Source of the DNA: Bugula neritina
Taxonomy: Eukaryota > Animalia > Bryozoa
Direction: 5' to 3'
Assembly: GCA_964035545.1 (NCBI GenBank)
Contig: OZ037766.1
Span: 4,454,722 to 4,518,721, forward strand
DNA: 64,000 nucleotides
Below, in pieces: positions 13,190 through 59,416 of this stretch. The notes beneath the pieces were generated by a model. That model had not been told where the DNA came from, did no database searches, and saw only the letters and a program-made list of their open reading frames with translations. Position 1 is the first letter of the stretch. Every line of letters begins with the position of its first letter. A program made the position numbers and the translations under genes.

Positions 13190-14310
13190 GACGGATGGAG
13201 TTGTCTACACAATACAAATTGCTTTCGCCAGGAGTACTTGTACACTCTCCCATTTGATAATAATAGTAACCGAATACGTTATGCGCGTTTTTCAGAATTC
13301 GATAGAAACAGCATTACGTTGGGAAGTAACTAAGTGCAACGTCTGAATAGACATTCACCGGCTTTCCATGTACCGATCTCAGATCGATCTCGGCGAGATC
13401 GATTCATGGAAAGACGCCAAAGATCGATCTCCATCGTTCTGAGCTGGTCGGTCTGTGGAGCTCGAACTCAGATCGATCTCATGTCAATAAGACCATGGAA
13501 AGACGCCAGATCGATCTGAGAAGTAGAAAAAGACTGCTCGCTACAATGTTGTCTGCTAATAAAAATGATAACTTGTTGATAATTACTAAGCAAAGTATTA
13601 AATAATTATGATAGCCATCTTTTCAGATGCCAAAACTTTGACTTTCAGCACAATGATTAAGAAAACTTAATTATATGCAGTAGAAGGCAAAAAAATAGGA
13701 GAATTTAAATTAAATTTAAATGACTATTAAAACTTAGTTTCATTGGCTATTTTCTTTGTAATTTTAAGCCTAACAGTCCTGTAAGTTTATTAATAATCTG
13801 CAAGACAGCTATTAATTTTATATAAGCTGTCTAGCTAAAAAATTAAAATTAATTATTTTAAATTGGCCAAATTACTGTACCCTGAAAGCTTTGCTGCGTA
13901 TATTTTATAGCTGGGATTAAATTTTAGACTACTACCATCTTGTTTTCAACAGTAGTAGCTTTAATCACTCAAATAGGTAAACAAAATATACTTTTCAAGT
14001 ATCCTTCACTTAAGAGGAGGCAACTTCGCGAGATCGATCTGACACTCTCATGGAAAAACGATCGATCTGAGTACATTTCTCAGATCGATCTCAGCGAGAT
14101 CGATCTGAGATCGGTACATGGAAAGCCCGTGATTATTATTTGAACTATAAACAAGAACCAGTGCACTCAATGACCACTAACGCGGTGCTGCCTCAAGTAA
14201 CTGCGGTATTTCACATCTCTAGAACTGCAACAACAAATTTTCCAGACAGCTTACCATCAAACTCAATAATATTTCCAGCTCAGTGTAGCTTACATGGTTT
14301 CGACCAGTGT
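13190..14310. repeat. Old dispersed repeat, interrupted by the MITE; related copy at ~60180-60445
   Basis: Shared blocks ggagtt(g/a)tcta(c/t)acaata, gtacactctcc(c)atttgat, cggtgctgcctcaag and cttac(a/g)tggtttcga occur in the same order at both loci. Boundaries approximate. Confidence 0.5.
13356..14131. mobile_element. MITE family 1, copy 1 (776 bp)
   Basis: Long TIRs CACCGGCTTTCCATGTACCGATCTCAGATCGATCTCG / CGAGATCGATCTGAGATCGGTACATGGAAAGCCCGTG, 3-bp TSD ATT, subterminal GATCGATCT and CATGGAAA repeats. Near-identical to 58245-59019. Confidence 0.93.
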
Positions 14311-14952: not shown

Positions 14953-15634
14953 GTAATATGGCCCACACCAATGATACCAATGTATTATAGATATATATTG
15001 TAATATACTTATATATCATATTGATATACATTAAGTGTAGTAGCCTATTCATTGCTAAACATGGAACAATAGTTAATATGAATTTTCTGGAATAATATTC
15101 CTATTTTCACAGGTTGGTGTGAGACAAAACACAGTAATACAATAACCATAAACATTATTTTTAATGGATATTTATTATGGAAATATTGTTTTAAACAAGA
15201 AATATAAAAATACAAATAATATATAAATATATTTCAATAATATAAATTGCAACAGAGAGGGTTTGTGGTAATAATATTACAATAATGCTAAACAAAATAC
15301 AAGTAAAAGTCTATAAACTAATATTTTCTTGGGGTAATAAAATACACATATTTGAAATGTATAAACGATTCAGAAGCAAAATGAATCAAAACTGATGGTG
15401 AAAAATAGATCAATAAAACCTCAAAATTTGATGTTGATATGTGAATTGCCATGACATTGCCGGTGTGCAACCAGCAAAGCATGTTTCCTGATTGCTATAA
15501 TAATATGTTACGAATAATACAAAAATATACAATAATACAATGCATTTCTTACAATTGTCATCACTTCACTCAGGAGCCATCAATTAAGCAGTTGCTTTAA
15601 TATTAAGTAAACACTCCAATATATATATAATATA

Positions 15635-18600
15635 CTAAAATATGCATAAATTAAATAGGTCAAGTGTGGCTCTGCATACTATTTCTTCCTTGATGTTGAC
15701 CTTCCTCTTCATTACATAGACTGTATAAGACAAGGCAAACATGTTTCTTAGAAGATGATAAAGTGCACATGATTCAGTATATCATGTGATAAGAGATGCT
15801 TGATTGAGAAGCAGCATGCATTGCCAAACTAATATACCTGACAGTTGAAAAATCAAAAAATATGAGGTATAGTTTCAGAGAGGCATACTTTTGCTTAGCT
15901 CAGTGAAACGAAAAATTAGGCGAACTGAAGTTATTCAGAAAAAACTGCAAATCCTCATCTCAAACAAGCGGCAGCTAATAGCTGACTTAGGGTCACAATG
16001 CAACAGAAAAGAGTTTGTAGTCTTTTAATATTACTGAGACTTCTTACAGACTTCTGACATTATAACACTGCATACAGGGTTACCGTGTTTAGAGAAGCTG
16101 CTGCTTTACAATGGTTAGTGAGGGCATTACAGTAATAACACATAGAGAGGAACTGAAAGGAGAACAGCAGAGACTAGGTGTGAGAGGCACCCTAGTTATT
16201 CGTGTGAGTGGAAAGCAAGGAGCAATTACTCTACCGTAGTACTGTTCGCCCTGCATCTTCCTCATATAACAGTGTATCAACACTATTAGCAAGATGAGGA
16301 AAAGAACTCCCTCAGCAATACCAATGATGAGTGCATACGGCACTGGGGGCGGCGGAGGAAGAGTAGGCGGAGCTACACATAGCAACGAGAATATTATGGC
16401 TAGAAGACATTTAAAACCTTACCATATAATTGCTTTCTTTTGTTTTCTTGCGTACATAATATTTATCACCCAATGAGCAGAATTAGAAAAAGGAAACCGC
16501 AGATTGCTCCAAAACTGAGAGGGTAGTGAGCAAATCCTGCATTGACTGCTCCTACAAGACATACAATGATCTACATACTTGTACAAACAATGCAATGGTT
16601 ACAGTGTAGTGTCTCACAATATCACAGAGAAAAGACGCATGGGCTGGCAGGCTGTTGGGGTATCCAAAACCTGTTATAAAATCCATGTAAAAACTATAAT
16701 GATTAGCCTCAAGAGCAAATGAAGTGCTAATGCATAATATTTTTTGTGATGACAAGTGAAATAAATACCGGTAGTCTAAAAACATGCAGTTTCTTGATAG
16801 GGGGATAGCAAGACACCCGACTTACCCGTAACGATATCAAAGACCACGGGATCACTTTGAATTGTCTTAGTAAAATCGCCAAAAAGAGAATAGGTAACCG
16901 CGCAGTGCCACTTGCTCGCCCTCAGGTTACGGGCGTTCTCACTGCCATCAGGATCAAGAGAGAGTGACATCTTTATTACTCCATCATTATTTGGAGATAT
17001 ATCTACAGCCTAAAACAAATAATATAATTCTATAATCACTACGACCACGGCCTCAATTCACAACTGCTCAGCATCATTTCCACATGCCTATTTGTAAATG
17101 CTCTTGTTATTATAATTGCTCAGGGCTAAAATTTGAAAGTTCAGGGACACATGTGACCCTGGATCTTCAGTTTGACAACACCAACCCAATTTTCTCAGCA
17201 AAATGTGCTGTTAATGGCTGTGGCATAGTCAGAGGTTGGTATTTGCTACCCTTTGGAAAAAACTGGATCGAGATGAAAGATGTTTGAATTTATGCTTGAA
17301 ACCACTTGATGTAATTGGTTTACTTATTTCACCAAACTGTACAGCTGTACACTGTATGCAAAAATATGGCAAACAGTTGGTTTAAGAAAACAACTAATTA
17401 ACCCCAAGTATTACTGCCTTCACAGACGTTGATGAACTTCACTGACAACGAGTTATTGTGGAACAGATAGAAAAGTAGTAATTATGAGTGTACAATTTAC
17501 TTGTCCAGCAAGAAAGAAACTTGGACAATGATTTCAGCAATTGATTAAAAGAGCAAATGCATCTAATAGTTTTGGAATTTCTAACCAACAATAAATAGCA
17601 AAGAATACCCACCTTAACACCAACACCACCTTCCTTTGTGAGCTTTACATCAGACTTATTTGACATCCAATAAGCTTCCTCCACAACTGCATTACTGTCC
17701 AGAGTGACCGTACACAGGAAGTTGAAAGTATTTGTGGAGTTGAGGTCTTCTGTATAAATAATATAGAGGTCGGAGGGCAGAGGCGACTGTTCGAGAACTG
17801 CTTCATCTACAGTAAAAGAAAATAATCTCAACACCAGAATATTGAGTACATAGTCATAGTCTATTAGTCTATTACTATAAGTTTGGCAACCAAAATGAAC
17901 GAAACCAAATTTTCCTTGGATGTCATAAGAGAAGGCAACTGGGTAACTTTAGACTGAATGAAATTGATTCTGACTGATTTTAGGAGAATATATGCTTTCA
18001 TTGCTGTAAACTAATTAAATGTTAGCAAATAAATGAAAATATTAAGGTGTTTTTCAAGTTTTCCAACATTTCCCATGCCTTTTCATATTGAATTATTAGT
18101 GAAAAAACAGGTAAAAATGATGTTGTTTGCATCACTGTTAGTGAACTGTATTTAATTATAAGAACCACTCTATTCCATATACTTGGAACCAATTTTTTCA
18201 ATAGTTCAAATAAAATACAAACTATACTTCTATTTGATGGTGACAGTATAAGCAAAATAGTGTTCAAGTAAAACCGAGCTTGTTCAGTAAGTACATTTCG
18301 TACACCTACATTTTTGGTCAGAAATAAGAGGTTTAGTGTTAAAAACCTTTTCCTTGGCTTTTTTTCTTATGTACACATTTAGATTCAGCAAGTGAAAATA
18401 CCCCAAATAGCATGTTTAGGAATTTTTAGCCAAATGAACTTTTTGCCCTAATCTTCCAGTGTGTAGTAAATAAATTAAAATGGCGCAATTAGGATTATAA
18501 CAAGGACATGGTAGAAAGATGTTACTTTTATCAGATTTGTAATTATGCACCTACCATAGATGGTCAGGTCTGAAGTCTCATACAGAGTGCCAGCATCATT

Positions 18601-21600
18601 GGTGGCTACACAGAGTATACTACCAGACATGTTCTTCTGGGCTCCCTCAATGGTAAACTTGGTGTCCATGGCCGAGTCGTATGTTATCCAGGAGGGCATA
18701 TCTAAATACAAGAAAATAGAACTGTAGAGTACAAGATGGAGCTAGTAAATACTGTTTAAATGGGGCAGAGGTCATGTTCGAACATACTCTGCTAGATGCA
18801 TACATACCTTCCGTAATCTTTTGACCATTGAAGTAAAACTCTGTAGCAAAAGCGAGCCGATTTTCAGCGTCACAAACCACCTGAACATCTGAACCAGTTG
18901 GTTCATAACGATTTCGAGCGAACTTTGATCTATCAGTTAGTTTGGGGTATAGCTGAACTTTTACCTAGTAATGAACAGTGCATCACATCATATTTTACAC
19001 TCTACAGCAGTCAGGAACAAGCTTTGATTTACTTGTACAAGCTTTTATTTTACTTTTGTAAAAAGACACTATAGTAAAGTTGAGAACTGTCCAACAGTTG
19101 GTTTTAGTATACAGACAATGAGCTACATGAATTAACATATCATCTGACATTCTACAGCTCTCAGTTCACTTATGGATATTATGATAAAACTTTGGCTATA
19201 AGATAAGTTTGACTTCACTCACAGCTAATGAGTGTAGATAAAGTTCCTATATACAGAGACAAGGAAGTTCATAGATCATTTATAACATGACACTAAGGAA
19301 ATAGTGGTTGTAGGCACCAGTAGCTTCATGAACATGATAACAATTATTTCATAAGTTTGTATTGATTGCATCATTCACAAGTCACAAGTCTTCAGAGTTC
19401 ATTTGTTGAGTAAAATACTGATAATGGAAAAATACTGATTATCTCTTCGAAGGTGCTACTTGTCAACAAAAACTGAAAAGACAGCATGAATTTTAGCTGC
19501 CAACCAAAAGTATACTGCACTATAGTTAGCTCATCAGTGCAGATATAATGTAGGCCTACATAGTTGTATGCAGTCGGCTTTACTTACATTAAACACCAGA
19601 GTAGCAATAGTAGCCAAAGAGGTCTCGTTATACACCTCGCACTGCCACATCTCTTGCGAGTTACTCGATGGCAAGAAGATATAATTAAATTTTCCATCTG
19701 TGGAATCAGAAGTCGAGGCATCACCTGGTCGCCTCCACCTCACCTTCCCTTCTCTGCCGGCTCTAAAACATGTCAATAAGTGATGCCTGGGAAGTCAGTT
19801 TGGCAGCAATTATCGATAATAACTATGCCGAATAAGTGATCACCTCGGCCTGACTACAATCAGTTCTTAACATAGAAACTGGTCACAGTGGATTGTTAGC
19901 AATCAGTGTATCCTCTCATTAACACTTGCCGTACTGTACGCCGTAAGAGCAAATATCAGTCATTTTTACAAATGTCTGAACTTCCTGCACAGCGTTGCGG
20001 TACGTCAGGATCAAACACTGCTTCCTTCAAACAAGTTTCTGCGGGCTCCTATGTGACAGAAAAACTTTTGCGTCAACTCATTGGATATAATTGTCCAATG
20101 AAGTGTCATAGAACGTATCTAATAGCAAACTTTGAAAATCTCAGCCCGGACACATTAAAAATGGCTGACATTTTACGTTACGGCCTACGGTACGGCAAGT
20201 GGGAATGAGGGGTATGGGAAAAGGAAGTGGATCTGGACTGCGCATTCAAACACGTATAAAGGTGAAAAGTGTTACCAACCAGGAAGTTATTATTAGGTAC
20301 TGTTGATGTTAAATAACCCAATATATAATTGTCAATTTCTCCATGGGGTATTAACATATTGCAATGCATAAGTATAAGATTACAATAAGTCAAGATAAAA
20401 AATATCCACAGCTGTAGAAATATTTTACACTTTTAAGTTCTTCATTCTAGAACATGGAACCTTATATGTTTATAGATAGCAAACAAAGTTATTTACTCCA
20501 ACACAGTTTCACATCAACAAAAAGCACACAATATATTTTGAAGCTTTGAAAAAAACCAACTTCACTGAGTTCATTCTCTAAGAATCTGTAAATATTAGTC
20601 CTTCAGATAACAGTAGACAGTAGATATCAATTAATCTGGTATAGAGCTACAGGTAAACACTTACAGTCTTCCAAAGATGCACACAAGTTGACAGGGCACA
20701 CCCTCTTCGCACATGATTTCAGTCTTGACTTCGTGCACCATAGTTTCCTCATTCATTGTCAGGTCAGCTTCTTTCGGGTCTAAATAGGCAATTTCAGGGA
20801 TGTCCTCACTACTCGATCCCACAAGCAATGTGACCATATTTGCTACTGCTGCAGCATTGTCAATTGACAGTGTACAGGAGTACACATCCCTGCCTGTTCG
20901 CTTGTCCGAATCCAGCAGATAGGCAAAGAACAATTCGCCTAGAAAAACGAGTATAAATTGTAATTTTTCATAATCAAGTTCAACATGGAAGAACCAGAAA
21001 AACTTTGTGATAGAGTAATTTCAGCTTACTGAAGATTTGAAAGCAAGTCAAGATGTTACATGATAAATAAAAAAACATTGTGAACACAATTATAAAGTTT
21101 TTTCTAAGCGGCAGCAATCCAAAAATCCCATGCTAAGGATGTTGTAAACCCTATACAAATTACAGTATCTGCATACACACTATCAGAAAAAGAAAGACAG
21201 CATCCACTTTCTCACCAGTAATGGGGTTGGCTTTGATTCGATTTAAATTGTCTGCGCTGTCAAAGTTCAGATTTGCAAAAATGCCATTTGTTGATGTTTC
21301 CCATTTGAATTGAGGAATTTCTAGAGAAATTTCGCGTGTATACTGTGCAAGGTCTTCGGGCTCTGGAACTGCCCTGTCATCGTAAGTGTCTGGCAAAATG
21401 CATGGAATTGAGAATGGCTGGTTTAGTTCAGGACTTCCTACAGCGGGATTTGCCAGAACCGAACCTCCCAACACTTTTGGATCTACAGTAAGAAGGCAAA
21501 TGTATTATTACTTTTAACGTATTGAATGAAAGTAGGCACATTCAACCGGCATTGAATCAAAATGAAATCAGTTAATTCAGCTCTAACAAAATAAATATAA

Positions 21601-24185
21601 ACATTCCAGAGTTTAATAAAGGAAATTTTGTGAACAAAAAAGTGAATGGAAATCCAGTAGACAAAGAAATGTAAAAATTAATTTTGCAAAAGAAAAGCTG
21701 ACAAGTGAAAGTTTGTAAAAAGATTGCCTTCCCATTGCTAGCAAAATCAGATGCTTATATCAATATATAACATAGTACTAGCAACCAGCAAAGAAAACTT
21801 TCACTTTTTATTTTATGCTAGACTGAAGTGAGAAGGAAAAAATGAATTTTCTAGGAGAGGTAAATTAAAAAATGTAGTTAATTAAAAATATGCAAGCAGC
21901 TTTGTCATCCACATATATTGATTTTGCAATAATTTATAAAAAAAAACATTTGAATTTATTTTCAATTCAAATTGAAAAAACATTAAATATTTTATTCATC
22001 AATTCGATAGAAATTACTTTACCAACAATTTCAAACCTATAAGTTTGAGTTGCTAACTTTCAAAACTGTCGTTTTTTCGCTGATCACATAACATTTCGTA
22101 GATAAATCATGGTTCAAAACCGAGCCTGTTATTTCTCAATATACTTTTTCAAAACAATTTTCTTATCCAGTAGGTCTAATATAGTAGTATGTGACATTAT
22201 GGAGTATGTTGAAAAACCTTTAAGAGAGCAATTTCTCAACATATACAGCAATTGCATTCCACAATGCTGCTTCTGAAAAATTTCACTCAGATTGAAATTT
22301 TCACTACAATACCTGTACATAATACTTTATCATAAATGGAAATTATCACTGGAGACATGACTTGTAATGTTAACCAGACACACAGACGCCACAACAATCA
22401 GTGGAAACAAGGTGCTAAGTATAAACAATGATACAACTTACATGGCAAGATGACTCTAAATGTTGCTGACAATGTTTCAAACTTTCCACCGTTGTTAGAA
22501 GCCACACATCTGTAGTAGCCGTTCATTGGTTTCAAATCATCCAACTGTCGAGTATCTCCATCAGTGATAGTCAGTTCTTGCTCAGTGGTTGATATCCGGA
22601 TTGGAGCACCAACCCAGAGAGAGGGCAGTGTATCACTAAACGGACCTGCACTGGTTTCAGCATATTGAAACTTTAGAGTCTCCACATTGCTGGCACGGCA
22701 CGTCATTTTATTGACTATATCTACACCATCAGCTGCCTGGGCCACCTGCACATAGTCAGCTGGATCTTTCAGCTCCTTCTCAACAAAAAAGTGAGTGCCA
22801 AGATAGTCAATACTGGGTGCTTTGTCTTCTATTTGTCCTCTAGCTGTAACAAATTGAAGACTCTTGACTATAGAAATTAGGCACTAGCACATTGAACAGC
22901 ATACACTAGTCAAAATGAGTTAACAAATTCCTAAATAAGTGTAGTTAAGGCAGAGCTGGTAAACCTTGAATTATGAGATTAATTTGAAACTTTCATGTAA
23001 AGTTACACTGTATCAACAAAAAATAAATTCCCAATTCTGGTGGCACAGTAATTATGCAATAGCCAATGAATTTGGATGAAATAACAAAATATTCTTTGTA
23101 ACTGAAGTAAATTTGTATCTGACACCAGGTGTCACTATTGACGGTAAGTAGTCTCACTTAACAATGAGGGTCGGAATAGAATTCCCTTGTGCGGAAAACT
23201 AATTAAACTATCTAATACTGTTTGTTGCCAAATTATTTGCTAATGTGATTTTAATATTTTCCAGTGACTATTGATTTCTGGTGTTCGGTAACAGTGCTGG
23301 AGCGTGACAGGGACACGGCTATGGTTCGCCGATTTATATCACAGCAGCTGTAGTCAGAGACAGTGACAGAAATCAGATTCCTGAGATTTGAATCACTAAG
23401 ATTCAACAGGAATTGCAGCGCAAGTAATCACCATTGGCAAACCTATAGAAACTAACCACTACTATTGCTAACTCAATAGTAACCTAATCAAAGAGCAGAG
23501 TATTTCGCAAAGAATAAAGTTTATTATATTTATAAGAGTCAGTTATAAACATTACAACAGGCAACAGTCGACTGACTGCTATTAAAAATACAACTCTATT
23601 AGTATTTATGTCCATATTACGGACGTCTTGGAGCACAAAACAGACGTCTTGAGGTACAACCAATTATTTACATACAAAAATTTTATAAAGCTCACAACAA
23701 TTTTAATATAAAATTAGCATTACAACTTGTATCAACCAATCACAATATATCAAAATTAGTTGACCTAGCTTTGAGTTAGTTAAATTATATTGCCAGAATG
23801 ATTTAACTTGCAAGTCCGATAAAGATCACCTTGACCTAGTCTCTATATTCACAATATTCTTATTCAGGGCCATCAACTTGACGCAACATGTACTGATCAA
23901 TGGCTCTAATAATACTTTTTACTACATAACTACATTTTATTTGGTAAATAGGAAATCAAATATCAATAGCAGGTTAAATGACAGATACTTATCTAAATAT
24001 GAATACTATAAGAATTTGTGAAAACCAAACCTTTGCATGTTTTTCACAAAACAATCAGCACAGTATTTGCTTTTGCACAATTCTAGTAAAAAAGATATAA
24101 CCTTTGCAATAGTTTTCTATTACCTACACTTACCCCCAGTAATGAGTGTTAGCACAAAGATACAGGTCTTTAAACTCGCCACCAT
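15635..24185 (-). CDS. IgSF receptor copy B (5 Ig; GPI-like or TM isoform)
   Basis: Exons 24185-24134, 22867-22442, 21482-21216, 20938-20665, 19762-19588, 18964-18808, 18701-18555, 17806-17613, 17009-16826. Then either TM-1 16551-16466 (stop, 653 aa) or TM-2 16372-16235 plus putative tail exon 15720-15635 (VYVMKRKVNIKEEIVCRATLDLFNLCIF*, 699 aa). Frames intact; the tail exon is the least certain part. Confidence 0.85.
19911..20212. mobile_element. MITE family 2 (~300 bp) in intron 4 of copy B
   Basis: Imperfect TIRs CTCATTAACACTTGCCGTACTGTACGCCGTAA / TTACGGCCTACGGTACGGCAAGTGGGAATGAG, flanked by TA. The equivalent site is empty in copies A and C. Confidence 0.75.
23103..23926. mobile_element. 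Solo LTR (824 bp) in intron 1 of copy B
   Basis: TGAAGTAAA...TTTACTACA termini, 4-bp TSD TAAC. Empty site tgtaactacatt in copies D and E. Confidence 0.8.
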
Positions 24186-26643
24186 TTTCTTCTTATAAAA
24201 CTATACAATAACCAGTCTAAAAACAAATAATATTGTTTAGGAATTTGAGCACACAACAGGTTTTCTACAAAGTCTGAGCTTAAAAGAACAGATTTACAAA
24301 AACCAAAGGTACTAAGTTACCTGGAATACAATATTGCATTAACTTATATCACCTAAATTTACCCCAGCTCGATGTAGCCTAAATGTGCATCATTAGGATT
24401 AGCAGTCTATTCTGCCATACTAAGAGAGGTACAAATTCATACTAGTACTATTATTTAGCAAAACTCTAAGTTGATGCCACCTAATAAAATATACACCTTA
24501 ATTGCATATCGAGTCCATCTTGACCTTTTTATTTTCAATTTCTTTTTTACATTAACACTAGCTTTTGGGTTAGTGCTTAGGAAATTAACTTGGTGAGGAA
24601 TGGATGCAGACAGCACATAAGTAAGTAGTAGCTTAGTCTGCTATGGTCGGGTAGATATCCACTCCATAACTAGAATATTTTGTGAGTTGGGTGTTGGATG
24701 TTGAATTAACAAATAGAGTGGTACTAGATCAGAAGGTAGGCTACAAGTTACCAACTTTCTCCAGACTACTAAAGTTTGGGAATTATAAGTAAAATTCCTG
24801 TTGGGTGTTGAAGACAGGCTTCTAGATAGACGTAAGGGTAAATGCTTATTTAACAGCTATTAGACTAGTCTTTTGAGTGTTTAACACACCATATAATATG
24901 AGTGAGTAAAAAACTAGGGTTTTGTTCCTATGATTCATGTGTATTCATATTGTCAATTCATCTACATATAATGTACTTTGTTTACTTATCCAGCCAGATC
25001 TTATGCTATTTAAGTAACTATTATGAAACACCAGGCAAATTTTTCATAACACTGGTGCATGGTGTACTGTAGAAAGGGTATGACATCACAATTCAAAACA
25101 AAAAGAGAGATCAATTATCTCAATTGAACTGACTCAGTTTATGGTTATTGTAATGTAATTCAATTTGGCTCTAAGATAAGCATCAGTGAGTGACAAGTAT
25201 TTCCGGGTTAGCTAACAGTTTGACTAAAATAGATTTTAGCTAACTAATTTTGTCTTCTACAATAGCTTAGTCTCTTACCAGGTTATGCATTTATTGCAAT
25301 TGTAACAATTGTGCTCCAATAAATATATTTTGATAATTTAACTAAAAACTCAGATAGCCTTTCAGTTATTGGCATTCACTGTTCATGTATTCGTGTTACT
25401 GTTTTGTTATTTCTTAATATTATGGCTGCAGCTTGTACCATTTAGGAGCAGTAGTGGAAAAATTGAGTGTAACCTAAGTTTTTCAAATTTCTTTATGAAT
25501 TTTGGTGTTGTGTATAACATAACTTCTTTTGCTACATTTCTCATTTAGAACACAGGCTTTTCTCAATTTCTCCATTACTGCACCTACCTCTTGTGTAGTA
25601 GTCATCTCCGGCAGCTGCAGTAGACTCAAGATCCTAGTTATTGTAGGTGGTAGGTTAGAAAATAGTTATAAAATGAAATAGTGTTGTCAGGAATATGCAG
25701 CTTTGAGTTATTGCAACTTACCGAATAATATAATTGGGTTGTAGCCTTCAGGTGAGCTGCGAGGTAGCTCCAGCTCCCGTCAGTCGGTAGGGATGAAGTT
25801 GAGACTCCTGGTTGGGGTATTTGTCCGTGGGTGCTCCGTCGTTGATGCTCCTGGGCTAGCACTCACTAATACACCTTAACGAATTCTAATCTATTCAGAT
25901 TTATATATTCTCTTCTTTCCACAACCTTCAATCACTCCATTCACCCAATCTTCTCCCCATCTCTTTCATACACACTCTGCTTTATATCTCAACACTAGCA
26001 CAAGCCACACCCACACTATATGTATGTTGATGCAAATATCACGGAGTTGTGCATTTCATACACACACAAGAGTAAAAGAAGACAACTACAACTAACTTAC
26101 AAGTTCGGATACAACGATAGGTAAAAGGCTAAGCTAAGCTAATCACTACTGCACCTGAAAGCCCAATTTGGAATTTAATGAATCTTTATTATGGAAATAT
26201 TGTTTCAAACAAGAATTATAAAAATTCAAATATATAAATATAATTCAATAATATAATTTGCAACAGTGAGTGTTAGTGGTAATAATATTACAATAATGCT
26301 AAACAAAATACAAGTAAAAATCTATAAACTAATATTTTCTTGGGGTAATAAAATACACATAATTGAAATATATAAAAGATTTGGAAGCAAAATGAATCAA
26401 AACTGATGGTGAAAAATAGTTCAATAAAACCTTAAAATTTGATGTTAATATGTGAATTGCCTTGACATTGCCAGTGTGCAACCAGCAAAGCATGTTTCCT
26501 GATTGCTATAATAATTGTTACGAATAATACAAAAATATACAATAATACAATGCATTTCTTACAATTGTCATCACTTCACTCAGGAGCCATCAATTAAGCA
26601 GTTGCTTTAATATTAAGTAAACACTCCAATATATATATATATA

Positions 26644-29600
26644 CTAAAATATGCATAAATTAAATAGGTCAAGTGTGGCTCTGCATACTATTTCTTCCTT
26701 GATGTTGACCTTCCTCTTCATTACATAGACTGTATAAGACAAGGCAAACATGTTTCTTAGAAGATGATTAATTGCACATGATTCAGTATATCATGTGATA
26801 AGAGATGTTTGATTGAGAAGCAGCGTGCATTGCCAAACTAATATACCTGACAGTTGAAAAATAAAAAAATATGAGGTATAGTTTCAGAGAGGCATACTTT
26901 TGCTTAGCTCAGTGAAACGAAAAATTAGGCGAACTGAAGTTATTCAGAAAAAACTGCAAATCCTCATCTCAAACAAGCGGCAGCTAATAACTGACTTAGG
27001 GTCACAATGCAACAGAAAAGAGTTTGTAGTCTTTTAATATTACTGAGACTTCTTACAGACTTCTGACATTAAAACACTGCATACAGGGTTACCGTGTTTA
27101 GAGAAGCTGCTGCTTTACAATGGTTAGTGAGGGCATTAAAGTAAAAGCATATAGAGAGGAACTGAAAGGAGAACAGCAGAGAGAAGGTGTGAGAGGCACC
27201 CTAGTTATTCGTGTGAGTGGAGAGCAAGGAGCAATTACTCTACCGTAGTACTGTTCGCCCTGCATCTTCCTCATATAACAGTGTATCAACACTATTAGCA
27301 AGATGAGGAAAAGAACTCCCCCAGCAATACCAATGATGAGTGCATACGGCACTGGGGGCGGCGGAGGAGGAGTAGCATAGGCGGAGCTACACATAGCAAC
27401 GATAATATTATGGCTAGAAGACATTTAAAACCTTACCATATAATTGCCTTCTTTTGTTTTCCTGCGTACATAATATTTATCACCCAATGAGCAGAATTAG
27501 AAAGAGGAAACCGCAGATTGCTCCAAAACTGAGAGGGTAGTGAGAAAATCCTGCATTGACTGCTCCTACAAGACATACAATGATCTACATACTTGTACAA
27601 ACAATGCAATGGTTACAGTGTAGTGTCTCACAACATTAAAGAGAAAGAAAACATGGGCTGGCAGGTTGTTGGAGTGTTAAAACCTGCTATAAAATCCAGG
27701 TAAAAGCAATAAGCTGAGCCTCAAGAGCAAATGAAGTGCTAATGCATAATATTTTTTGTGATGACAAGTGAAATAAATAATTAATAGTCTAAAAACATGT
27801 AGTTTCCTGATAGGGAAAAAGCAAGACACCCGACTTACCCGTAACGATATCAAAGACCACGGGTTCGCTTTGAATTGTCTTAGTAAAATCGCCAAAAAGA
27901 GAATAGGTGACCGCGCAGTGCCACTTGCTCGCCCTCAGGTTACGGGAGTTCTCACTGCCATTAGGATCAAGAGTAAGTGACATCCTTATATTCCCGTTAG
28001 TATTTGAAGATATAATTACGGACTAAAACAAATATAATTCTATAATCACTACTACTACAGCCTTGAATTGCAGCTGCTCAGCATAATCTAAACATGGAGT
28101 TATTAATTCATTTATTTCACCAAACAAACGGTACATCCCAAAAGTGTAAAAACATACAAAACAATTGGTCTAAGAGAACAAATTAAACAGATCTGTATCA
28201 ACAAACTTCCCAGACAATAAATTATTGTGGAACAGGTAGAAAAGTAGTGATTATAATCAGTGTACAATTTACTTGTCGAGCAAGAAGACAACTTGGACAA
28301 TGATTTTAGCAATTTAGTAAAAGAGCAGATGCATCTGATAGTTTTGGGATTTCTAACAAACAATAAATAACACAGAATACCCACCTTAACACCAACATCA
28401 TCTTCCTTTGTGACCTTGACATCAGACTTATTTGACATCCAATAAGCTTCCTCCACAACTGCATTGCTGTCCAGAGTGACCGCACACACAAAGTTGAAGG
28501 TAGACTGCGTGTAGTCAAGGTTTTCTATATGAATGATATAGGGCTGGGAAGGCAGAGGCGCCTGAAGGAAAACTGCTTCATCTACAGTACAACAAAATAA
28601 TCTAGACTCAACACTGAACTGATAGTACAAGGCCATATATATAGTTACACCAGATGACATTTAAGATAAAATAATTTTCGCCCGATTTATGATAATCCAG
28701 ATGCTAATATGTATTTTTCTCACACATATCTTAAATCAGCACATGAAAGTACCATAAATAGCAATTTTATGAATTTTAAGCCAATCTCACTCTTCATAAA
28801 AATCTGCTGATGTGTACTTAATAAATTAGAATGACCTAATTAAGATTATAACAGTGGAATGGGAGAAAGATGTTACATCTCCCAGATTTGTAGCTATGCA
28901 CCTACCATAGATTGTCAGGTCTGAGGTCTCATACAGAGTGCCAGCATCATTAGTGGCTACACAGAGTATACTACCAAACATGTTCTTCTGGACATTGCGA
29001 ATGGTAAACCTGGTGTCCATGACTGAGTTGTAAGTTATCCACGAAGGTGTACCTAAATACAAGCAAATAGAACTGTAGAGTACAAGATGAATTTGGTGAA
29101 TACTGTTTTAATGGGGCAAAGGTCATGTTGGAACGTACCCTGCTACATACATACATACCTTCCGCGATCTTTTGACCATTGAAGTAAAACTCTGTAGCAA
29201 AAGGGCGTCGATTTTCAGCGTCACAAACCACCTCAACATCTGAACCAGTTGGTTCATAACGATTTCGAGCGAACTTTGATCTATCATTCAGTTTGGGATA
29301 TAGCTGAACTTTTACCTAGTAATGAACAGTGCATCACATCATATTTTACACTAAACAGCACTCGTGAACAAGCTTTTATTTTACTTGTACAAGCTTTTAT
29401 TTTACTTTTGCAACAAGACACTATAGTAAAGTTGAGAACTGTCCAATAGTTGGTCTTACTATAAAGATAGTGAACTACATAAATTTAAATATCATATGAC
29501 ATAAGAGATTCTTCTACAGCTCTCAGCTTGCATTTATGATGAAACTTTGGCTATAAGATAAGTTTGACTTCACCCACAGCTAATGAGTGTAGTTAAACTA

Positions 29601-32600: not shown

Positions 32601-35600
32601 TATCCGGATTAGAGTACCAACCCAGAGAGAGGGCAATGTATCACTAAATGGATCTGTACTGGTTTCAGCATATTGAAACTTTAGAGTCTCCACATTGCTG
32701 GCACGGCACGTCATTTTATTGACTATATCTACACCATCGGCTGCCTGGGCCACCTGTACATAGTCAGCTGGATCTTTCAGCTCCTTCTCAAAGAAAAAGT
32801 GAGTGCCAAGATAGTAAATACTGGGAGCTCTGTCTTCTATCTGTCCTCTAGCTGTAACAAATTGAAGACTCTTGACTATAGAAATTAGGCACTAGCACTA
32901 TGAACAGCGTACAGTGGTCAAAGTGAGTTAACAAATTCTTAACTCACTGTATATAAGGCAGAGGTGGACACTTTGAATTATGAGATTAATTTGATAATTC
33001 CATGTATGCAATGCAATGGCTACAGTGTAGTGTCTCACAATACATATTGCAAATGTTACAGAGAAAGGACGCATGGGCTGGCAGGCTGCTAGGATGTTCA
33101 AAACCTGCTATAAAATCCAGGTAAAAGCAATAAGCTGAGCCTCAGATCAAATGAAGTGCTAATGCATAATATTTTTGTGATGACAAGTGAAATAAATAAA
33201 TAGTCTAAAACATGTAGTTTTCTGATAGGGAGATAGCAATGACACCCGACTTACTCGTAACGATATCAAAGACCACGGGATTACTTTGAATTGTCTTAGT
33301 AAAAGCCCCAAAAAGAGAATAGGTAACCACGCAGTGCCACTTGCTCGCCCTCAGGTTACGGGTGTTTTCACTGCCATCAGGATCAAGAGAGAGTGACATC
33401 TTTATTTCTCCATCATTATTTGGAGATATATCTACGGCCTAAAACAAATATAATTCTATAATCACTGCCACAGCCTCAATTTACAACTGCTCAGCATTGT
33501 TTCCACATGGCTATTTGTAGATGCTCTAGCTTGTCATGATTGGCTCAGGGCTAAAATTTGAAAGTTTAGAGACAAAAGTGGCCCCGGGTCTTCAGTTTAA
33601 CAACTCAGGCCCAATTTTCTCAGCAAAATGTGCTGTTAATGGCTGTGGCATAGTAAAAGGTTGGTATTTGCTACTCTTTGGAAAAACTAGATGGAAATGA
33701 AAGATGTTCGAATTTATGTTTGAAACCACTTGATGTAATTGGTTTAATCAGTTCAACAAACAGACTGTACAGCTTAGAAGTGTGAATACATGGAAACAGT
33801 CGGTTCATAAAAAACAACTAATTAACCTCAAGTATTACAGCCTTCACAAATGTTCATGAACTTTACTGACAATGAGTTATTGTGGAACAGGTAGAAAAGT
33901 AGCAATTATAACCAGTGAGTGTACAATTTACTTGTCCAGCAAGAAAAAAACTTGGACAATGATTTTAGCAGTTGAGTAAAAAATAAAATACATCTGATAA
34001 TTTTGGAATTTCTAACCAACAATAAATAATACAGAATACCCACCTTAACACCAACATTATCTTCCTTTGTGACCTTTACATCAGACTTATTTGACATCCA
34101 ATAAGCTTCCTCCACAACTGCATTGCTGTCCAGAGTGACCGTACACAGGAAGTTGAAAGTATTTGTGGAGTTGAGGTCTTCTGTATAAATAATATAGGGA
34201 TTGGAAGGCAGAGGCGACTGTTCGAGAACTGCTTCATCTACAGTAGAAGAAAATAATCTCAACACCAGAATATTGAGTACATAGTCATAGTCTGTTAGTC
34301 TATTACTATAAGCTTGGCAACTAAAATGAACGGAATCAAATTTTTCCTATATGTCATAAGAGAAGGCAACTGGGTCACTTCACACTGAATGAAATCAGTT
34401 TTGCCTGATTTATGAAAATATATGCTTTCTTTGCCGTAAACTATTTAAATGTTAGCAAATAATTGAAAATATTCAGGTGTTTTTCAAATTTCCCAACATT
34501 TTCAGTGTTTTTATATAAAGTTATTAGTAAAAAAACAGGTTACAGTGATGTTGTTTGCATCACTGTTAGTGAACTGCATTTAATTATAAGAACAACTCTA
34601 TTCCATATACTTGGAACTATTTTTTTTTAATAGTTCAAATAAGATACAAACTATACTTCTATTTGGTGGTGAAAATGTAAGCAAAATAGGGTTCAAGTAC
34701 AACCGATCTTGTTCCGCAAAGTACATTTCGCACACCTACATTTTTGTTTAGAAATAAAAGGTTTGGTGTTACACAACTTTTCCTTAGCCTTTTTTCTTAT
34801 GTACACATTTAAACTCAGCAAATGGAAATACCCCCTAATAAATTATTTTTTTGAATTTTAACCCAAATGAACTTTTTGCCCTAATCTGCCAGTATGTAGT
34901 AGATAAACTAAAATGGCCCAATTAGGATTATAACAGTGAAATGGTAAAAAGACGTTACTTCAATCAGATTTGTAGCTATGCACCTACCATAGATTGTCAG
35001 GTCTGAAGTCTCATACAGAGTGCCAGCATCATTGGTGGCTACACAGAGTATACTACCAGACATGTTCTTTTGGGCTCCCTCAATGGTAAACTTGGTGTCC
35101 GCGACTGAGTCGTCTGTTATCCACGAAGGTGTACCTAAATACAAGCAAATAGAACTGTAGAGTACAAGATGAAGCTAGTAAATACTTTTTAAATGGGGCA
35201 AAGGTCATGTTGGAACATACTTTGCTAGATGCATACATACCTTCCACAATCTTTTGACCATTGAAGTAAAACTCTGTTACAAAGGCGACCCGATTTTCAG
35301 CGTCACAAACCACCTCAACATCTGAACCAGTTGGCTCATAACGATTTCGAGCAAACTTTGATCTATCAGTCAATTTGGGATATAGTTGAACTTTTACCTA
35401 GTAATGAACAGTGCATCATATCATATTCTACACTAAACAGCACTCAGGAACAAGCTTTGATTTACTTGTGCAAGCTTTTATTTTACTTTTGTAACAAGAC
35501 ACTATAGTAAAGTTGAGAACTGTCCAACAGTTGATCTTACTATAAAGATAGTAAACTACATGAACTAAAATATCATCTGACATGAGATATTCTTCTACAG

Positions 35601-38600: not shown

Positions 38601-41600
38601 TTAATATACTTTATCAAAACAATTTTCTCATACAGTAGGTCTAATGCAGTAATATGTGACGTTATGGAGTATGTGGAAACGCTCGTAAGGGAGAAATTTC
38701 TCTCAACATATACAGCATATGCATTCCACAATGCAGCTGTTATAATTTTCAGATTTAGGGTTGATGTGCTATCCAGAGAGTCTATTTATTTACTATAGAA
38801 CTGCACCAGGATAAGTCGAGTGAACGAGTATATTTTACACACAATTATACATTATAAAAACGATACATTATTTCCAAACAAGTTACACATCTAATCTATT
38901 TCACACTCTAGCTTTGACTGAGTTAACAGCGGGAAACTATAATTGCTGCTAACTATCAACTACGCTAATTGGATAGCCATTGTTCCGGGTCAATTACGCG
39001 ACCCCACATGTTGTGCTGCTGGTAGTTCCACGAACCACCACACCGCCCCCACCAGCAGAAAGCCACCTTTCTGATATATATATAAAAAAAAACATTCATT
39101 AGTAACCGCATACATCAGTGGACAAAATAATACATAATATACAGGAAGAGACATAATAATAGACAGAGTCATTATAACGATCCGTTGCATACAAGTGGCC
39201 AGCTGTAGATAGACGAGGAATACTAGCTAGCTGTGGTGTTAGACAGGGGATAACCTGTTAAGCAGTCAAACATTTGCATGACATCTTGGTTCCTCCCAAG
39301 ATGTGAAGTTGCGGAGTATTCTGGGTAGCCTAACTAGAGTCCTTGTTGGGCACGCTGGTGCTTGGCTTGGCATGTACGCAGTTTCCGTTTCATACAGCAT
39401 ACGGATCCCTTTAGCTGGAAGAGTCCTGTTGTAGTGTTAAGTAGATCTGGTGCCAGCTGGGTGAATTCTTCTTGTAATCGCAGGAGGCGTTCTTCTACTG
39501 TGGCTAGGCGGACTGGGTCTGGGGACGGTGTCCGTCTGCGGCGCAAGGGTGGACTGGGGGACCTGGTTCGTCTCTTCGCCGGGGTAGGGGAGATCTCTCC
39601 TTCTTCTGGATATGTAGTTTCCTCGGGGGTGTATGTAATTTGAGGGCGGTCAGACACCAACGGGGATTGTTGGCGGGCGTTGTCTAACACACGTTGGAAC
39701 CCCGAGGACAGAACGGCTAATAGCATGGCCTTCTTCACCAGAGGTCGTATAAGTGTGAGGAACTCCGGGTATAGCTTAGCGTCGACCACGTAGTTTTCTC
39801 CAGGGAAACAGCCCGCCGCTCTGTGTCTGGTGACGGGGTAGGGATACACATCATTGTACCCGCAGGGGCAGAATGTTAGTAGGAGATGAGCATTGACGTG
39901 TAGTTTAAGGGAGCGGTGAGAGGCGCAATCTTCACCACAGATCTGGCATCTCGTCCGTCCTCTGGACCCCCAGGCCGTTTCTATTTCTTCTTCTGTTTGT
40001 GGAGACACCCACCGCCAACGGCGGTGTAGTGGCTCAGGCCGGTCACCACTAGCATACTCCTCTGGATACGGAGCGGGAAGTGTTCTATCCCGTACCCTGG
40101 TTGTAGCGGGTTCGAGTGTAATCTGAAAAAGTTTCAACAGTGTTAATACAGTACACTGCTGTGTTGTCAGCTTGAACAGCTTGGCAACTCCTAATTCAGT
40201 TACCTCGTAGAGATTTATGGTAGTGAATAGTCAGATAGAACACGTATTGCAATGAGATTATAAAAATCTCTAAGTCAAACTGAGTTCTTACTACGGTATT
40301 TCACTAGCCTATCTCCAGCTCGATTGACTCAGTGAGTCAGAGCTGAGCGATGCAATCTAGTTTCGTATTAAGATATAGTTAACTCACCCCACGATCTGTT
40401 GTCGTAAGACATACTGAATGCGTGAAATGGTTTGAACTACTGCTTAGAAACACGTCTACTCCTGACTGCATCAGCGTATGAAAAGATTGAGCAACGTGGT
40501 TGGGGTGCGTGATTAAGACTTTGTGCACCCGGCGGATGAATTTTGTTTCTATTTCCGCCGATGCAAAAGTTGATATTTCCGTGGTGTTGACAACTCCCAC
40601 ATTTGCTCGATTCTTTTCTCGTACGGTTTTCCCCTAGACTTTCATGCGTGCCGCCTTTAACGCAGTCACATACGAAGTCCTTCAAGTATGCGGGGGATTG
40701 CCTCGTACGCTGTCCCCTTTCTAGGGGGGGTGACACGCTTGCCGGTTCGTTAGTAGGGGCCTCTAATGGCGTCTCTACTTCACCGTCAGCGGTCACCTCT
40801 TCTTGTTCTCCGGATGGAGCCCCTCCCTCCGTGGGGGTTTGCACTTCCGGAACCGGCTCGGTTTCTGAAAGTGATGGAATTAGACTTGGCGGTGGCGGAC
40901 ACGCTTCTGTTGACAAAAGCTGCCGCTCCTCTCTCACCAAGTTTTCTTCCCGCGGTATGACCACTTCGTATTCAGGTCCATGCCGCCGTCGCCCGCGCGT
41001 TGTTGTCTGCCTCCTGGGCTCTAACAACGGGGGGCTTCTCCCACTCCGTCGGGGCTAGCCCAATACGGTTTCAAGCGAGACTCATTCTGGATAGACACCT
41101 GTCCTAAGCGCTCAATCTTGTACGTATGATTGGGCATAGCCTCGACGACCACGTAGGGCCCTACGAACTTAGGCTTCAGCTTATCAGCCTGTCCGCGGCG
41201 CCTACGGTAATTGACCATCCACACCTTATCTCCCCTTTGATAGAGAGGTGGTTCATCGGAATCTTCGTGCCGCACCTTCCACTGCTGTTGGCGCAGTATA
41301 TCGTGTGCGGCCTTCATCCGTTCCACTAGTTCACTGGCATACTCGTGGACTGAGTTATCTTGCTCTGGAACGTGATAGGTGAGATGGTCAGGGACACGAA
41401 TCTCTCTCCCGAGCATCAAGAGGTTTGGGGTCTCACCAGTACTGGTGTGTGGGGTGCTACGGTATGCACGCATGACTTGCGGCAACACCGTATCCCATTC
41501 CTCTTGACCTCGTCCAAGGAGGAGACTCCGGAGTGCATCACCTAGCATCCGATTGTTGCGCTCCACCACCCCGTTACCTTGAGGGTGGTAGGGGGTGGTC

Positions 41601-44600
41601 CTGCTCTGATTTACTCCCCAGAGGCGGCAAAGGTCGCTCATCAGTTGAGACTGGAATTGAGCGCCTTGATCAGAGTGTATCTGTTCGGGGAGCCCAAAAT
41701 AACAGAATACATGTTGGTCTAGTGCCCTGGCCACTGTTGGGGCTGATGCATCTGGGATAGCCAGAGCATCCGCCCACCTAGTAAAGTGGTCGGTTAATAC
41801 TAGGATCCAATTGTTGCCTCTGGGGGTCAGGGGCATGGGTCCGACCAGGTCTACAGCGACTACTTGCCAGGGCCTACCAGCGTATAGCCTCCGCCGTCCT
41901 GCTTCACCAGGGGGGCGGCTATGCTTACTGGCCTGGCAGATCTCACACTGTTTGACTCTGAGCCGGACATCACGCTCCATTTGTGGCCAATACCACCGAA
42001 GTCGTAATTTGGACATCACTCGCTTGACCCCTGCGTGGGCCTGTTTGTGAGTATCCCAAATCAACTCACGGCGGATGGCTGTGGGGCAGACTACCCTCTT
42101 CCTTTCCGGGTGTCTGCCGCTGGCAGCTAGAGAGATGGTTAGCAACCCATCCTGCCCGATCCGCAGCGAGTCCCAACGCTGACAGTATAGCCGGAATTCG
42201 GCGCATCCCTGCCGTATGCGTTCCTCGCTGGGTCGTCGCCCTTCCCTTTTGGCCCGGTATATGTCTGCCACGACTCCAGGCAGCTCTTCTTGGAGCTTTT
42301 TCAGCTCTCGAACATTACCGGCCAGTACAGGGTTGGCGCGGAGGTTTTGTACATCCTCCGGGGACTCATCAACTCTTTGCCTGAGTTGACCTTGATCCCA
42401 GTCAAACGGTGCTCCGTGGTGAGCCAGCGTCTCCAACTCGCATCGCGGGGGACCTCCATCCCTCCTCTCGATGTTGAGACACTGTTTGCAACCTCCGTCA
42501 GGTCGGCGACTCAACCCATCCGCATTGCTGTGTCTCTTGCCCGGTCGATGTTCGATCCGGTATGAGAATTCAGCTAGGATTTCGAGCCACCGGGCGACCT
42601 GACTAGAGGGCTCTGCTCTCCTGCACAACCAGATCAGCGAGGCATGATCCGTACACAGCCGGAACTTCCTGCCATATAGGTATGGTCTGAAGTGCTTCAC
42701 TGACTTGATTACTGCCAGCAGCTCCTTGCGGGTAGTGCAGTAATTTCGTTCAGCGGGTGAGAGAGACTTGCTGTAGTAGGCTACTACTACCTCTCGGCCT
42801 TCCTGCACTTGTGACAGCACAGCGCCAACATTTTGGTCACTGGCGTCCGTGTCTAGGATGTACTCCAGAGTGGGGTCTGGGTAGGCCAAGATGGGCGCCG
42901 TTAGTAGGCAGCCCTTGAGGCGGTCGAACGCTTCTTGTTCGACTGGAGTCCACTGCCACGTCACTCCCTTTGCGGTGAGCCGGTTTAACGGCTGGGCTAT
43001 GCCCGCAAAGTCTGGTGTGTATTGCCTGTAATACCCTACCAGCCCCAAGAAAGCCCGGAGTCCGGTCAAGTCTTGGGGGGTGACCCAGTCTTCTACTGCC
43101 CGTACCTTTTCGGGATCCGTTGCCACGCCGTTTCGACCGACAACGTGTCCCAGGTACTTGACCTCCGGCTGCAATAGAGCGCACTTGGAAGGTTTGAGCT
43201 TGAGACCGGCACCTCGGAGTCTCTCGAAAACCTCCTGCAGACGACTGACATGTGTCTCGAAGTCTGGAGAGATTACGATGACATCATCGAGGTAGACCAG
43301 CAGTGTCTTCCAATGGAGTCCGCTAAGGACTTGTTCCATCAGCCTCTGGAAGGTGGCTGGGGCGGAGGTTAACCCGAAGGGCAGCACCTTCCACTTCCAC
43401 AAACCGTCCCGTGTGATAAACGCCGCCTTCTCTTGGGCGTCGGGACTCAGAGGAACCTGCCAATAGCCGCTTAGCAAGTCTAACGTACTGAAGTACTTGC
43501 TGCCGGCTAGGGCGTCCAATGACTCGTCAATACGAGGTAGAGGGTAGGCGTCCTGTATGGTGACGCTATTGAGTTTGCGGTAGTCCACACAGAACCGCCA
43601 ACTGCCGTCTTTCTTCCGGACCAGTACGACTGGCGAGCTCCACGCACTATGGGCGGGCTCTATCAGTCCCCGGTCCAGAAGATCCCGTACTTGTCGGCTA
43701 ACCTCCTTCTCTTTCTCCGGCCCCAGCCTGCGTGTGGGCTGCCGGACAGGGACTGTCCCTGCAGTCAGCGGTATTTCGTGTCTGACAATTCCAGTCAGTC
43801 CCACGTCATGCTCTCCGCTGCTGAACACATCACCGTAGTCGCGTAGTAACTTAGCCATAGCTTGGCGTTCTCTGTTACTCGCGCAGCCGCCACTGGCTGT
43901 TTCGTATAACTCCCGGAGATGTGTTGGGACTGCCCCTCGTCCCTGAATAGGGCACTGAGGGAGTGCCTCTGTCGCATCACCCAGCGACGGGCCTACGTCT
44001 CCCTCTTGAACAGAGTGGAAACGGCCCAGCATCGACCCAGCCGGGAGCTTGATAGGCTCGGTAAAGAGGTTGACGCACTGCACTAAGATCTCCCCTTGCT
44101 CAGTCAGCTGATTCAGACTGCTGGCAAGTTGGATCTTTTCGTGCGCGCCTTCAACCACCCCGAGTCCAGAGATCCGGCTACTATTCACCCTGCAGTGAAT
44201 GGTAGCCCGGGAGCGGCCTGGTATGATACGGTTGCGTATCACTTGCACACCTCCCACTAAAGGGCGGCCGAACTTGTCGACGCAGGCGAGTTCCCGCCCG
44301 GACATCATCATTGCAGATCTGCTAAAATCTATGTGACATCCGTGCCGTTTAAGGAACGGCATCCCGAGGATAGCATCCTCCTTGAGCTGACTGACGATGA
44401 ACGTCTCTTGGATCGTTTGATCACGGACTCGTCCCGTCAGCTCAATTATACCATAGAAGGGAAGGCACGACCCGTCAGCTAGGGTGCCGTATTCCCCTTC
44501 GTATGCTTCCATCTCGCCCCTGACCCTAGCACTGAGGGTGTCGAAGAGTTGGCGGCTTAAGAGGTTTGTGGTACAGCCCGAATCAATGAGGAAAGTAACA

Positions 44601-59019: not shown

Positions 59020-59416
59020 AATATGGGTGAGTAAACAATAAGGTTTTTGTTCGCATGATTCATGTGTGTTCATGTAACTGCCCTCCTAGGTTGATATGAA
59101 GGTTTCATATGGGTGTATGTTTTAGTTTAGTTTATTTATTCACACCGTGAGTCTACAACTTTTTTTTACAAGAAAAAAGATTAAAATATGATAGAATAAG
59201 AGCAAATTAAACATAGAAAAGTACATACAATAATTTGATAAATTGCTTGTTTTATAATTTTTTTAAATATTCAACATAATGCTTATAGTATAGATTAGCA
59301 AAGTTATAATATATAAAAGCATACTTCTTTCACCCTTTTTTAAGAGAGAGTTAGTAGTATAAGGAAAGAGATATTTTATACAATGCGTTTTGTGAAAGTA
59401 GCTGATATGATTTTAA

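Follow-up and report, generated by a model that had tools for sequence, protein, structure and literature searches.

What becomes of a membrane-anchor exon when translation stops exactly where its hydrophobic segment ends? The question is raised by a 64,000-nucleotide stretch of the Bugula neritina genome (contig OZ037766.1, positions 4,454,722 to 4,518,721; hereafter the window, numbered from its first letter). The minus strand of the window carries tandem copies of one cell-surface gene, arranged as the cassettes A, B, D, and a fused E+C. In copies B, C, and D the first of two exons for a transmembrane (TM) segment, here called TM-1, contains such a stop, and an earlier note on this DNA had proposed that the exon was converted to a signal for attachment of glycosylphosphatidylinositol (GPI). 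The TM-1 isoform of the stop-bearing copies is probably a tail-less protein, and from the sequence we judge the chances that it is GPI-anchored to be about even.

The Stop-Bearing Exon

In copy B, TM-1 was located at positions 16551-16423 on the minus strand (129 nucleotides (nt), phase 1 to 1), flanked by ag on the acceptor side and by gtaagg on the donor side, and in the gene model it is entered in phase 1 from the upstream immunoglobulin (Ig) exon. The exon encodes a short stalk with the triplet N-A-G, a spacer, and a hydrophobic run of 15-17 residues that ends in LLIG. Two stop codons follow LLIG directly on the minus strand (TGA at 16468-16466 and TAA at 16465-16463), and the last 43 nt of the exon, from the stop to the donor, are untranslated. 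The same stop is found in copy C (27565-27437, minus strand; 129 nt, phase 1 to 1) and in copy D (50668-50542, minus strand; 127 nt), where the CG of the hydrophobic run is replaced by YW. Translation of the three exons bears out the reading given in the earlier note, with its A/S and CG/YW variants.

The TM-1 exon of copy A is intact (1119-979, minus strand; 141 nt): its stalk is longer, and translation continues through a complete TM segment into basic juxtamembrane residues that close with ..GEQYY. Relative to copy A, the stalk of the stop-bearing exons is shorter by 12 nt, which agrees with the shortening noted previously. The truncation had been attributed to the loss of a single nucleotide. 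The position of the stop after the hydrophobic run stands, and the single loss does not: TM-1 of B-D differs from that of A by two 1-nt losses located about 10 nt apart, and B and C have gained an additional 2 nt further downstream. At the end of the hydrophobic run, GTGTTGATA in copy A is changed to GGGTGATA in B-D, and the long form is retained both in TM-1 of copy A and in the duplicate exon TM-2. The TM-1 tail of copy A (..NKGEQYY) mirrors that of TM-2 (..MQGEQYY) exactly where B-D are frame-shifted. This likeness identifies the intact form as the ancestral one, and the claim that the ancestral state was kept in copy A is thus upheld.

Additional copies were obtained from metagenome contigs (JGI, ENA) by a word search with the last Ig exon, in which four open reading frames (ORFs) were matched. 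The stop was found on four contigs from two JGI samples, which represent two sequence types, L007/L008 and L011/L012, each of which spans TM-1, TM-2, and the terminal exon. The JGI contigs are host DNA of the Bugula neritina holobiont, since their names bear AY690838, the accession in the mitochondrial-genome paper for this animal. The sequences GGG TGA TAA and N-A-G are identical in the two types. By this comparison, the stop is older than the divergence of B, C, D, L007, and L011 from one another; being common to B, C, and D by descent, it represents one event and not three independent ones. In the 216-Mb assembly (321 contigs) only four copies of TM-1 were found, and an exact 17-mer scan of the metagenome contigs for further copies, with close records excluded, returned 68 loci, all of them chance matches of 19-26 nt.

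Two RNA-seq runs from one sample (X1 and X2) and one DNA run (X3), all as contigs, were aligned to positions 15101-21100 of the window, the RNA at 90% likeness. These data bear on the simplest alternative, namely that TM-1 of B-D is really intact and that the frameshift was introduced in sequencing or assembly. The same sequence is found in three separately assembled copies, in the four JGI contigs, and in the RNA contigs; a contig of X3 spans the stop site with no gap there; and the site is not a long homopolymer. An error at the stop is ruled out by these independent data sets, and we regard it as extremely improbable. The X3 contig, which otherwise agrees closely with B, is 2 nt short at 16450, past the stop, and 1 nt short at 16345, in the run of C in the TM-2 stalk. 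These differences may reflect polymorphism in sequence that is untranslated or relaxed, or errors of the contig.

Splicing of TM-1 into mRNA

One contig, present in both X1 and X2, was found to join the last Ig exon (Ig5b) to TM-1 and TM-1 to the terminal exon, with TM-2 skipped. The corresponding joints, 16548>16826 and 15721>16425, are present in both RNA-seq runs, and neither is found in the DNA run X3. Over the aligned stretch, exon-like RNA depth and splice joints coincide with the predicted borders. Compared with copy B, the TM-1 RNA contig differs at six positions and has a gap of 2 nt at 16450; its exon starts with AAC, and position 16424 is C. The features agree exactly with the L011 exon and not with L007, C, or D. 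From the match in every diagnosable feature we infer that the RNA contig carries the L011 stop. The stop-bearing TM-1 is a real exon that is spliced into mRNA, in an L011-type sibling copy of another individual or lineage. An A-like TM-1 with the long stalk is spliced to the Ig exon as well, as seen in the loose ends of the RNA.

The distance from the stop to the donor, given previously as 43 nt, is confirmed for B, and across the copies, when TM-1 is included and TM-2 skipped, the stop lies 41-43 nt before the last junction. Decay that depends on the exon junction complex (EJC) spares stops this near the last junction, as established in mammals. By this rule the TM-1 mRNA would escape nonsense-mediated decay (NMD).

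A Second Anchor Exon 50 Nucleotides Downstream

In copy B, TM-1 is followed by an intron of 50 nt (16422-16373, minus strand) and by a second anchor exon, TM-2 (16372-16235, minus strand; 138 nt, phase 1 to 1), which supplies a stalk rich in proline, then a complete TM segment, and then basic juxtamembrane sequence with ..GEQYY at its end. By sequence, TM-2 is a duplicate of TM-1. The intron between them is the shortest of the gene, the remaining introns being 106-1290 nt long, and in L007/L011 it measures 55 nt. An intron of 50 nt leaves no room between the donor and the branch point, and TM-1 and TM-2 should therefore exclude each other. The length of this intron, which is probably too short to splice, suggests that the two exons are mutually exclusive by steric hindrance. 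No TM-1>TM-2 joint is present among the RNA joints listed. The RNA contig for TM-2 is a separate one of 141 nt, the ends of which coincide exactly with the two exon borders. The contig depths for TM-1 and TM-2, which are a rough measure, were 1621 and 3216 in X1 and 338 and 302 in X2, respectively. The TM-1 donor has the consensus gtaag, and the TM-2 donor is the weak gtagag. In copy B alone, a Glu codon (GAG) is found at the center of the TM-2 membrane segment, at 16313-16311; the RNA contig and every other copy have GGG (Gly) at this position.

The TM-2 exon of copy A is intact (928-788, minus strand; 141 nt). Copy C (27386-27244, minus strand; 143 nt) has 2 additional nt in the stalk of TM-2, and translation from the canonical acceptor loses the frame and reaches a stop after 30 codons, without a TM segment. 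Copy D (50491-50350, minus strand; 142 nt) has 1 additional nt in the stalk, with the frame likewise lost from the canonical acceptor. All of the stalk indels are located upstream of an internal CCCCAG acceptor, which is in frame in every copy and downstream of which TM-2 is 99-100% identical among A-D. For C and D, either TM-2 is decaying in the stop-bearing genes, which leaves TM-1 as the sole in-frame anchor, or the internal CCCCAG acceptor is used. The switch from a TM to a GPI anchor envisaged in the earlier note is supported in part, by the ancestral form in A and by the spliced exon. It does not hold as a simple replacement, since a second anchor exon stands 50 nt downstream.

The terminal exon of copy B (15720-15635, minus strand) provides 28 residues and a stop after TM-2 and serves as 3' untranslated region after TM-1. 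It is a degenerate homologue of the first L1-type cytoplasmic exon of copy A.

An RNA contig at 16160-16264 (depth 2133 in X1) crosses the weak TM-2 donor into the intron at exon-like depth, and over its first 140 nt or so this intron is 94-99% identical in A-D. Positions 16100-16264 may represent a retained intron or an alternative 3' end. An alternative tail encoded by read-through at the TM-2 donor was considered and rejected as conserved coding sequence, given a 7-nt frame-breaking deletion in L007/L011; a word search with the read-through ORF (16092-16385, minus strand) gave no match.

Fit to a GPI Attachment Signal

The published pattern for a GPI signal consists of a small residue at the omega site, an omega+1 residue other than proline, a small omega+2 residue, a hydrophilic spacer, and 15-20 hydrophobic residues; approximately 10 unstructured residues are usual before omega (PMC10491789). 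In five of the five stop-bearing copies the triplet N-A-G follows the omega rule (G, A, S, N, or D at omega, no proline at omega+1, and a small residue at omega+2), and alternative G-x-A/S triplets are found near it. As the earlier note had it for B, C, and D, the Asn is followed by 24 residues; this is the case in all five copies, and all five have an uncharged C-terminal run of 17 residues. The hydrophobic core of 15 residues (17 uncharged) ends at ..LLIG and is followed by the stop, with no cytoplasmic residue, and its length falls within the range of 15-20. Entry into the endoplasmic reticulum (ER) is provided for by the first exon, which by inspection encodes a signal peptide, and genes for the GPI transamidase are present in the same genome (PF04113, PIG-T/Gpi16, 235.8 bits; PF04114, GAA1, 107.7 bits). 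As the earlier note held, the C-terminus fits a GPI signal, at the level of the loose published pattern (PMC10491789), the rules of which are permissive.

Several features of the signal weigh against GPI attachment. The linker between the last Ig strand (..VVFDIVT) and the Asn has only about 3 residues (G-A-V), short of the usual 10. The spacer from N-A-G to the hydrophobic run has 5-7 residues (F-A/S/P-H-Y-P-L/F-S) and is only moderately polar; about 8-12 residues are expected, or 5-10 in older descriptions. The hydrophobic run is strong, with a 15-residue sum of about -2.4 to -3.0 on the Hessa scale, and efficient GPI signals are reportedly marginally hydrophobic, to judge by the title of a 2012 paper of Galian et al. 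The rule check is itself permissive, since the exon of copy A, cut at the same place, would pass with the triplet A-A-A. The RNA support for splicing of TM-1 comes from a sibling copy of another individual or lineage and not from B, C, or D.

Alternatively, the exon may be used and the product not be GPI-anchored. The run would then serve as a tail-less type I membrane anchor, or the uncleaved protein would be retained and degraded in the ER, and the isoform would be tail-less and signalling-dead, or short-lived. The strongly hydrophobic run, which is derived from a true TM segment, the very short linker before N-A-G, and the short, moderately polar spacer are all in keeping with such a product. 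On the other side, 15-17 residues without flanking cytoplasmic charge are short for a stable TM anchor and lie within the 15-20 range of GPI signals (PMC10491789), and a like truncation yielded working GPI signals several times in the CEACAM genes (PMC2832619). We estimate that this outcome is rather unlikely, at roughly half the weight that we give to GPI attachment.

The conservation of the exon also weighs against the GPI interpretation. Among the stop-bearing copies, TM-1 is 91-97% identical, compared with 83-95% for the upstream intron, and in a hand count on the alignment the changes before the stop are mostly non-synonymous. TM-1 is thus no better conserved than the intron, and selection on the exon, which is too short for a selection test to be informative, is not demonstrated. 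Indels of 2 nt are tolerated past the stop, as expected of untranslated sequence. The TM part of TM-2 and the next 140 nt of intron are 94-100% identical among A-D and differ from L007/L011, which agree with one another. Selection was considered as the cause of this conserved block and rejected in favor of gene conversion, since A-D agree, L007/L011 agree, and the two sets differ. The pattern points to gene conversion as an active process in the cluster, and gene conversion could keep dead copies looking intact.

A further alternative is that the TM-1 exon has become a relic in decay in B, C, and D, still included on account of its strong splice sites. The resulting mRNAs would be noise or a means of lowering output, with any real function carried by TM-2 (through the internal CCCCAG acceptor in C and D) or with the copies themselves dying. 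The conservation data, the indels tolerated past the stop, and gene conversion are consistent with decay, as is the confinement of the TM-2 stalk indels to the sequence ahead of an in-frame acceptor beyond which TM-2 is nearly invariant in A-D. Against decay, the stop-bearing exon is present in RNA at a contig depth comparable to that of TM-2, and the stop is placed out of sight of EJC-dependent decay. Moreover, five diverged copies from two lineages retain the splice sites, an open frame up to the stop, N-A-G, and the hydrophobic run, and the TM-2 RNA contig ends at the canonical acceptor and not at the internal one. Decay is considered to be unlikely, and slightly more so than a product that is used and not GPI-anchored.

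A Model for the Anchor Exon Pair

The explanation that we favor is as follows. Each cassette (A, B, D, and the fused E+C) would encode a surface protein of the secretory pathway with a signal peptide, five divergent Ig-like domains, and two anchor exons, of which one, TM-1 or TM-2, would be included per mRNA by steric hindrance. In copy A both anchor exons would encode a full TM segment, and a FIGQY tail of the L1CAM type would follow. Copies B, C, and D would descend from a duplicate that lost the L1-type tail and in which TM-1 gained the small deletions that led to TGA TAA, the 12-nt shortening of the stalk, and a new Asn. The TM-1 mRNA of these copies would yield an ectodomain that closes with N-A-G, a short spacer, and a hydrophobic run of 15-17 residues, after which no cytoplasmic residue would follow. 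This tail would be read as a GPI attachment signal, and the chain would be cleaved at the Asn or close to it and transferred to GPI. One and the same ectodomain could then be lipid-anchored through TM-1 or transmembrane with a short tail through TM-2. The explanation as a whole, with the truncated TM-1 as a GPI signal and TM-2 as the TM alternative, is given an even chance of being correct.

It is a larger claim, and one that we hold tentatively at somewhat less than even odds, that a cluster derived from an L1CAM-type gene independently reinvented a CEACAM-style conversion within a sterically exclusive pair of anchor exons, such that B and the L011 type switch between GPI and TM anchors by exon choice and C and D are GPI-only. 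If true, this would represent a membrane-anchor switch in an invertebrate, in which the intermediate states can be seen next to one another: the ancestral copy A, with its two TM exons and signalling tail; copy B, without the tail and with one truncated and one TM exon; and copies C and D, in which only the truncated exon is in frame. It would also mean that TM exons are pre-adapted to serve as GPI signals when their stalks are rich in small residues, and it would extend the CEACAM observation beyond mammals. The two exons and their 50-nt intron make up a compact natural minigene for the study of steric exclusion and of the 50-55-nt NMD rule in a lophotrochozoan.

Comparison with Known Anchor Switches

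In the CEA family, the TM exon of a CEACAM1-like ancestor repeatedly gave rise to GPI-signal exons (PMC2832619). The hallmarks of a CEACAM-type conversion, a small deletion, an immediate stop at the end of the hydrophobic run, and an intact paralogue, are all found in the bryozoan cluster. CEACAM5-8 of primates (and pig) are likewise tandemly duplicated genes for surface proteins of the Ig superfamily (IgSF), and there too a paralogue retains the intact TM exon and a signalling tail (PMC2832619). GPI anchoring is proven for the CEACAM proteins, whereas here it is predicted. The bryozoan genes differ in retaining a second, alternative TM exon 50 nt downstream, in lineage, and in parent family, the bryozoan cluster having an L1CAM-type tail. 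The mechanism matches the published CEACAM conversion. The route of conversion is already known from the primate CEACAM genes, and its occurrence here, in a bryozoan and in an L1-derived family, involves no new principle.

A choice between lipid and TM anchors at the level of splicing is also familiar. NCAM-120/140/180, Drosophila Fasciclin II, and Aplysia apCAM are GPI and TM isoforms, each set from one IgSF gene, that arise by alternative exon choice. The anchor would likewise be chosen at splicing in the bryozoan genes if our reading is true. In NCAM, Fasciclin II, and apCAM the GPI exon is unrelated to the TM exon, whereas the bryozoan candidate is a truncated duplicate of the TM exon, and unlike in those genes the bryozoan choice seems to be enforced by the 50-nt intron. 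The bryozoan case combines CEACAM-type conversion with NCAM-type exon choice in an L1-derived family. FCGR3A and FCGR3B are near-identical paralogues, one TM and one GPI-anchored, that differ by few nucleotide changes, including an earlier C-terminal stop. These are vertebrate Fc receptors without alternative anchor exons, and their anchoring is experimentally established.

The relationship to L1CAM and neuroglian is carried by copy A, which shares with them a downstream Bravo_FIGEY exon (51.6 bits). The juxtamembrane sequence ..GEQYY V.. resembles the membrane-proximal region of L1. The FIGQY tail is found only downstream of A; in B, C, and D the tail consists of 28 unrelated-looking residues. 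In place of the six Ig domains and three to five fibronectin type III (FN3) domains of the L1CAM family, five Ig-like domains in eight exons are found here. Copies B-D are thus not members of the L1CAM family proper, since they have no FIGQY tail and no FN3 domain was found in them.

Gene Model and Ectodomain

The model of copy B is complete, with AG/GT at all borders and with all phases in agreement. The first coding exon (24185-24134, minus strand) contains the ATG and the signal peptide (MVASLKTC.. followed by the hydrophobic core). As judged by inspection, it has a K-containing n-region and a hydrophobic core and is spliced in phase to Ig1. The conservation of this exon extends to A (7946), D (57163), and E (47274). 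The ectodomain is encoded by eight exons, E2-E9 (22843-16826, minus strand), which make up five Ig-like domains. In comparisons that took in the five cassettes A, B, C, D, and E, the ectodomain exons are open and their splice sites conserved in all five, and the pairwise ratio of non-synonymous to synonymous substitution rates (dN/dS) was determined to be 0.30-0.55 at a dS of 0.13-0.21.

Database searches were carried out with the exons one by one. In the exon-by-exon Pfam search, I-set was matched by exon E7 at a sub-threshold level only (20.8 bits against a cut-off of 23.7), and no FN3 domain was found. The predicted structure of domain 1 (exon E2) has a pLDDT of 83.7, and its top Foldseek matches in the PDB are all Ig V-type domains or the Ig1 domain of sDscam (probability 1.0, TM-scores of 0.4-0.55). 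On the basis of this model of domain 1, the Ig fold of the IgSF is present in the ectodomain. With exon E2 as the query of a whole-library HMMER search, the matches were confined to short ORFs of exon size and to generic Ig repeats of bacteria or animals, and no annotated full-length relative was among them.

Downstream of copy A, and outside the window, an exon homologous to the terminal exon of B was found together with the Bravo_FIGEY exon. The latter is located at L014:6642-6908, about 3.1 kb below the first base of the window (minus strand), and includes the sequence NEDGSFIGQY. From these matches, copy A appears to carry an ankyrin-binding tail of the L1CAM/neuroglian type on a five-Ig-like ectodomain. 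The duplication unit of B, C, and D ends approximately 560 nt past the acceptor of the terminal exon, and these copies have no FIGQY tail.

Other Features of the Window

In cassette E the last Ig exon (33438-33255) ends in phase 1, and the first Ig exon of C (32851), which is entered in phase 1, lies about 400 nt further on. Between E and C (32851-33438) there is neither an anchor exon nor an exon for a signal peptide, and the arrangement is one of 10 Ig domains in frame. Since it is repeated in a JGI contig (L009:727-1500), this arrangement is not peculiar to the assembly.

Three repeats were also noted. At 38737-46246, inside an intron of cassette E, direct repeats of 307 nt (38737-39043 and 45940-46246; 99.7% identical) flank a block of 52-57% GC in a region that is otherwise 35% GC, and this block looks like a young insertion of a long terminal repeat retrotransposon. 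In the E4/E5 intron of copy B, positions 19901-20300 have an X3 depth of approximately 19,000-29,000, a high RNA depth, many loose ends, and odd joints, which suggests a dispersed repeat. Finally, a 782-nt repeat with 98% identity is found at 13355-14136, between cassettes A and B, and at 58244-59024, just upstream of D, and the members of this pair are far more alike than are the cassettes among themselves.

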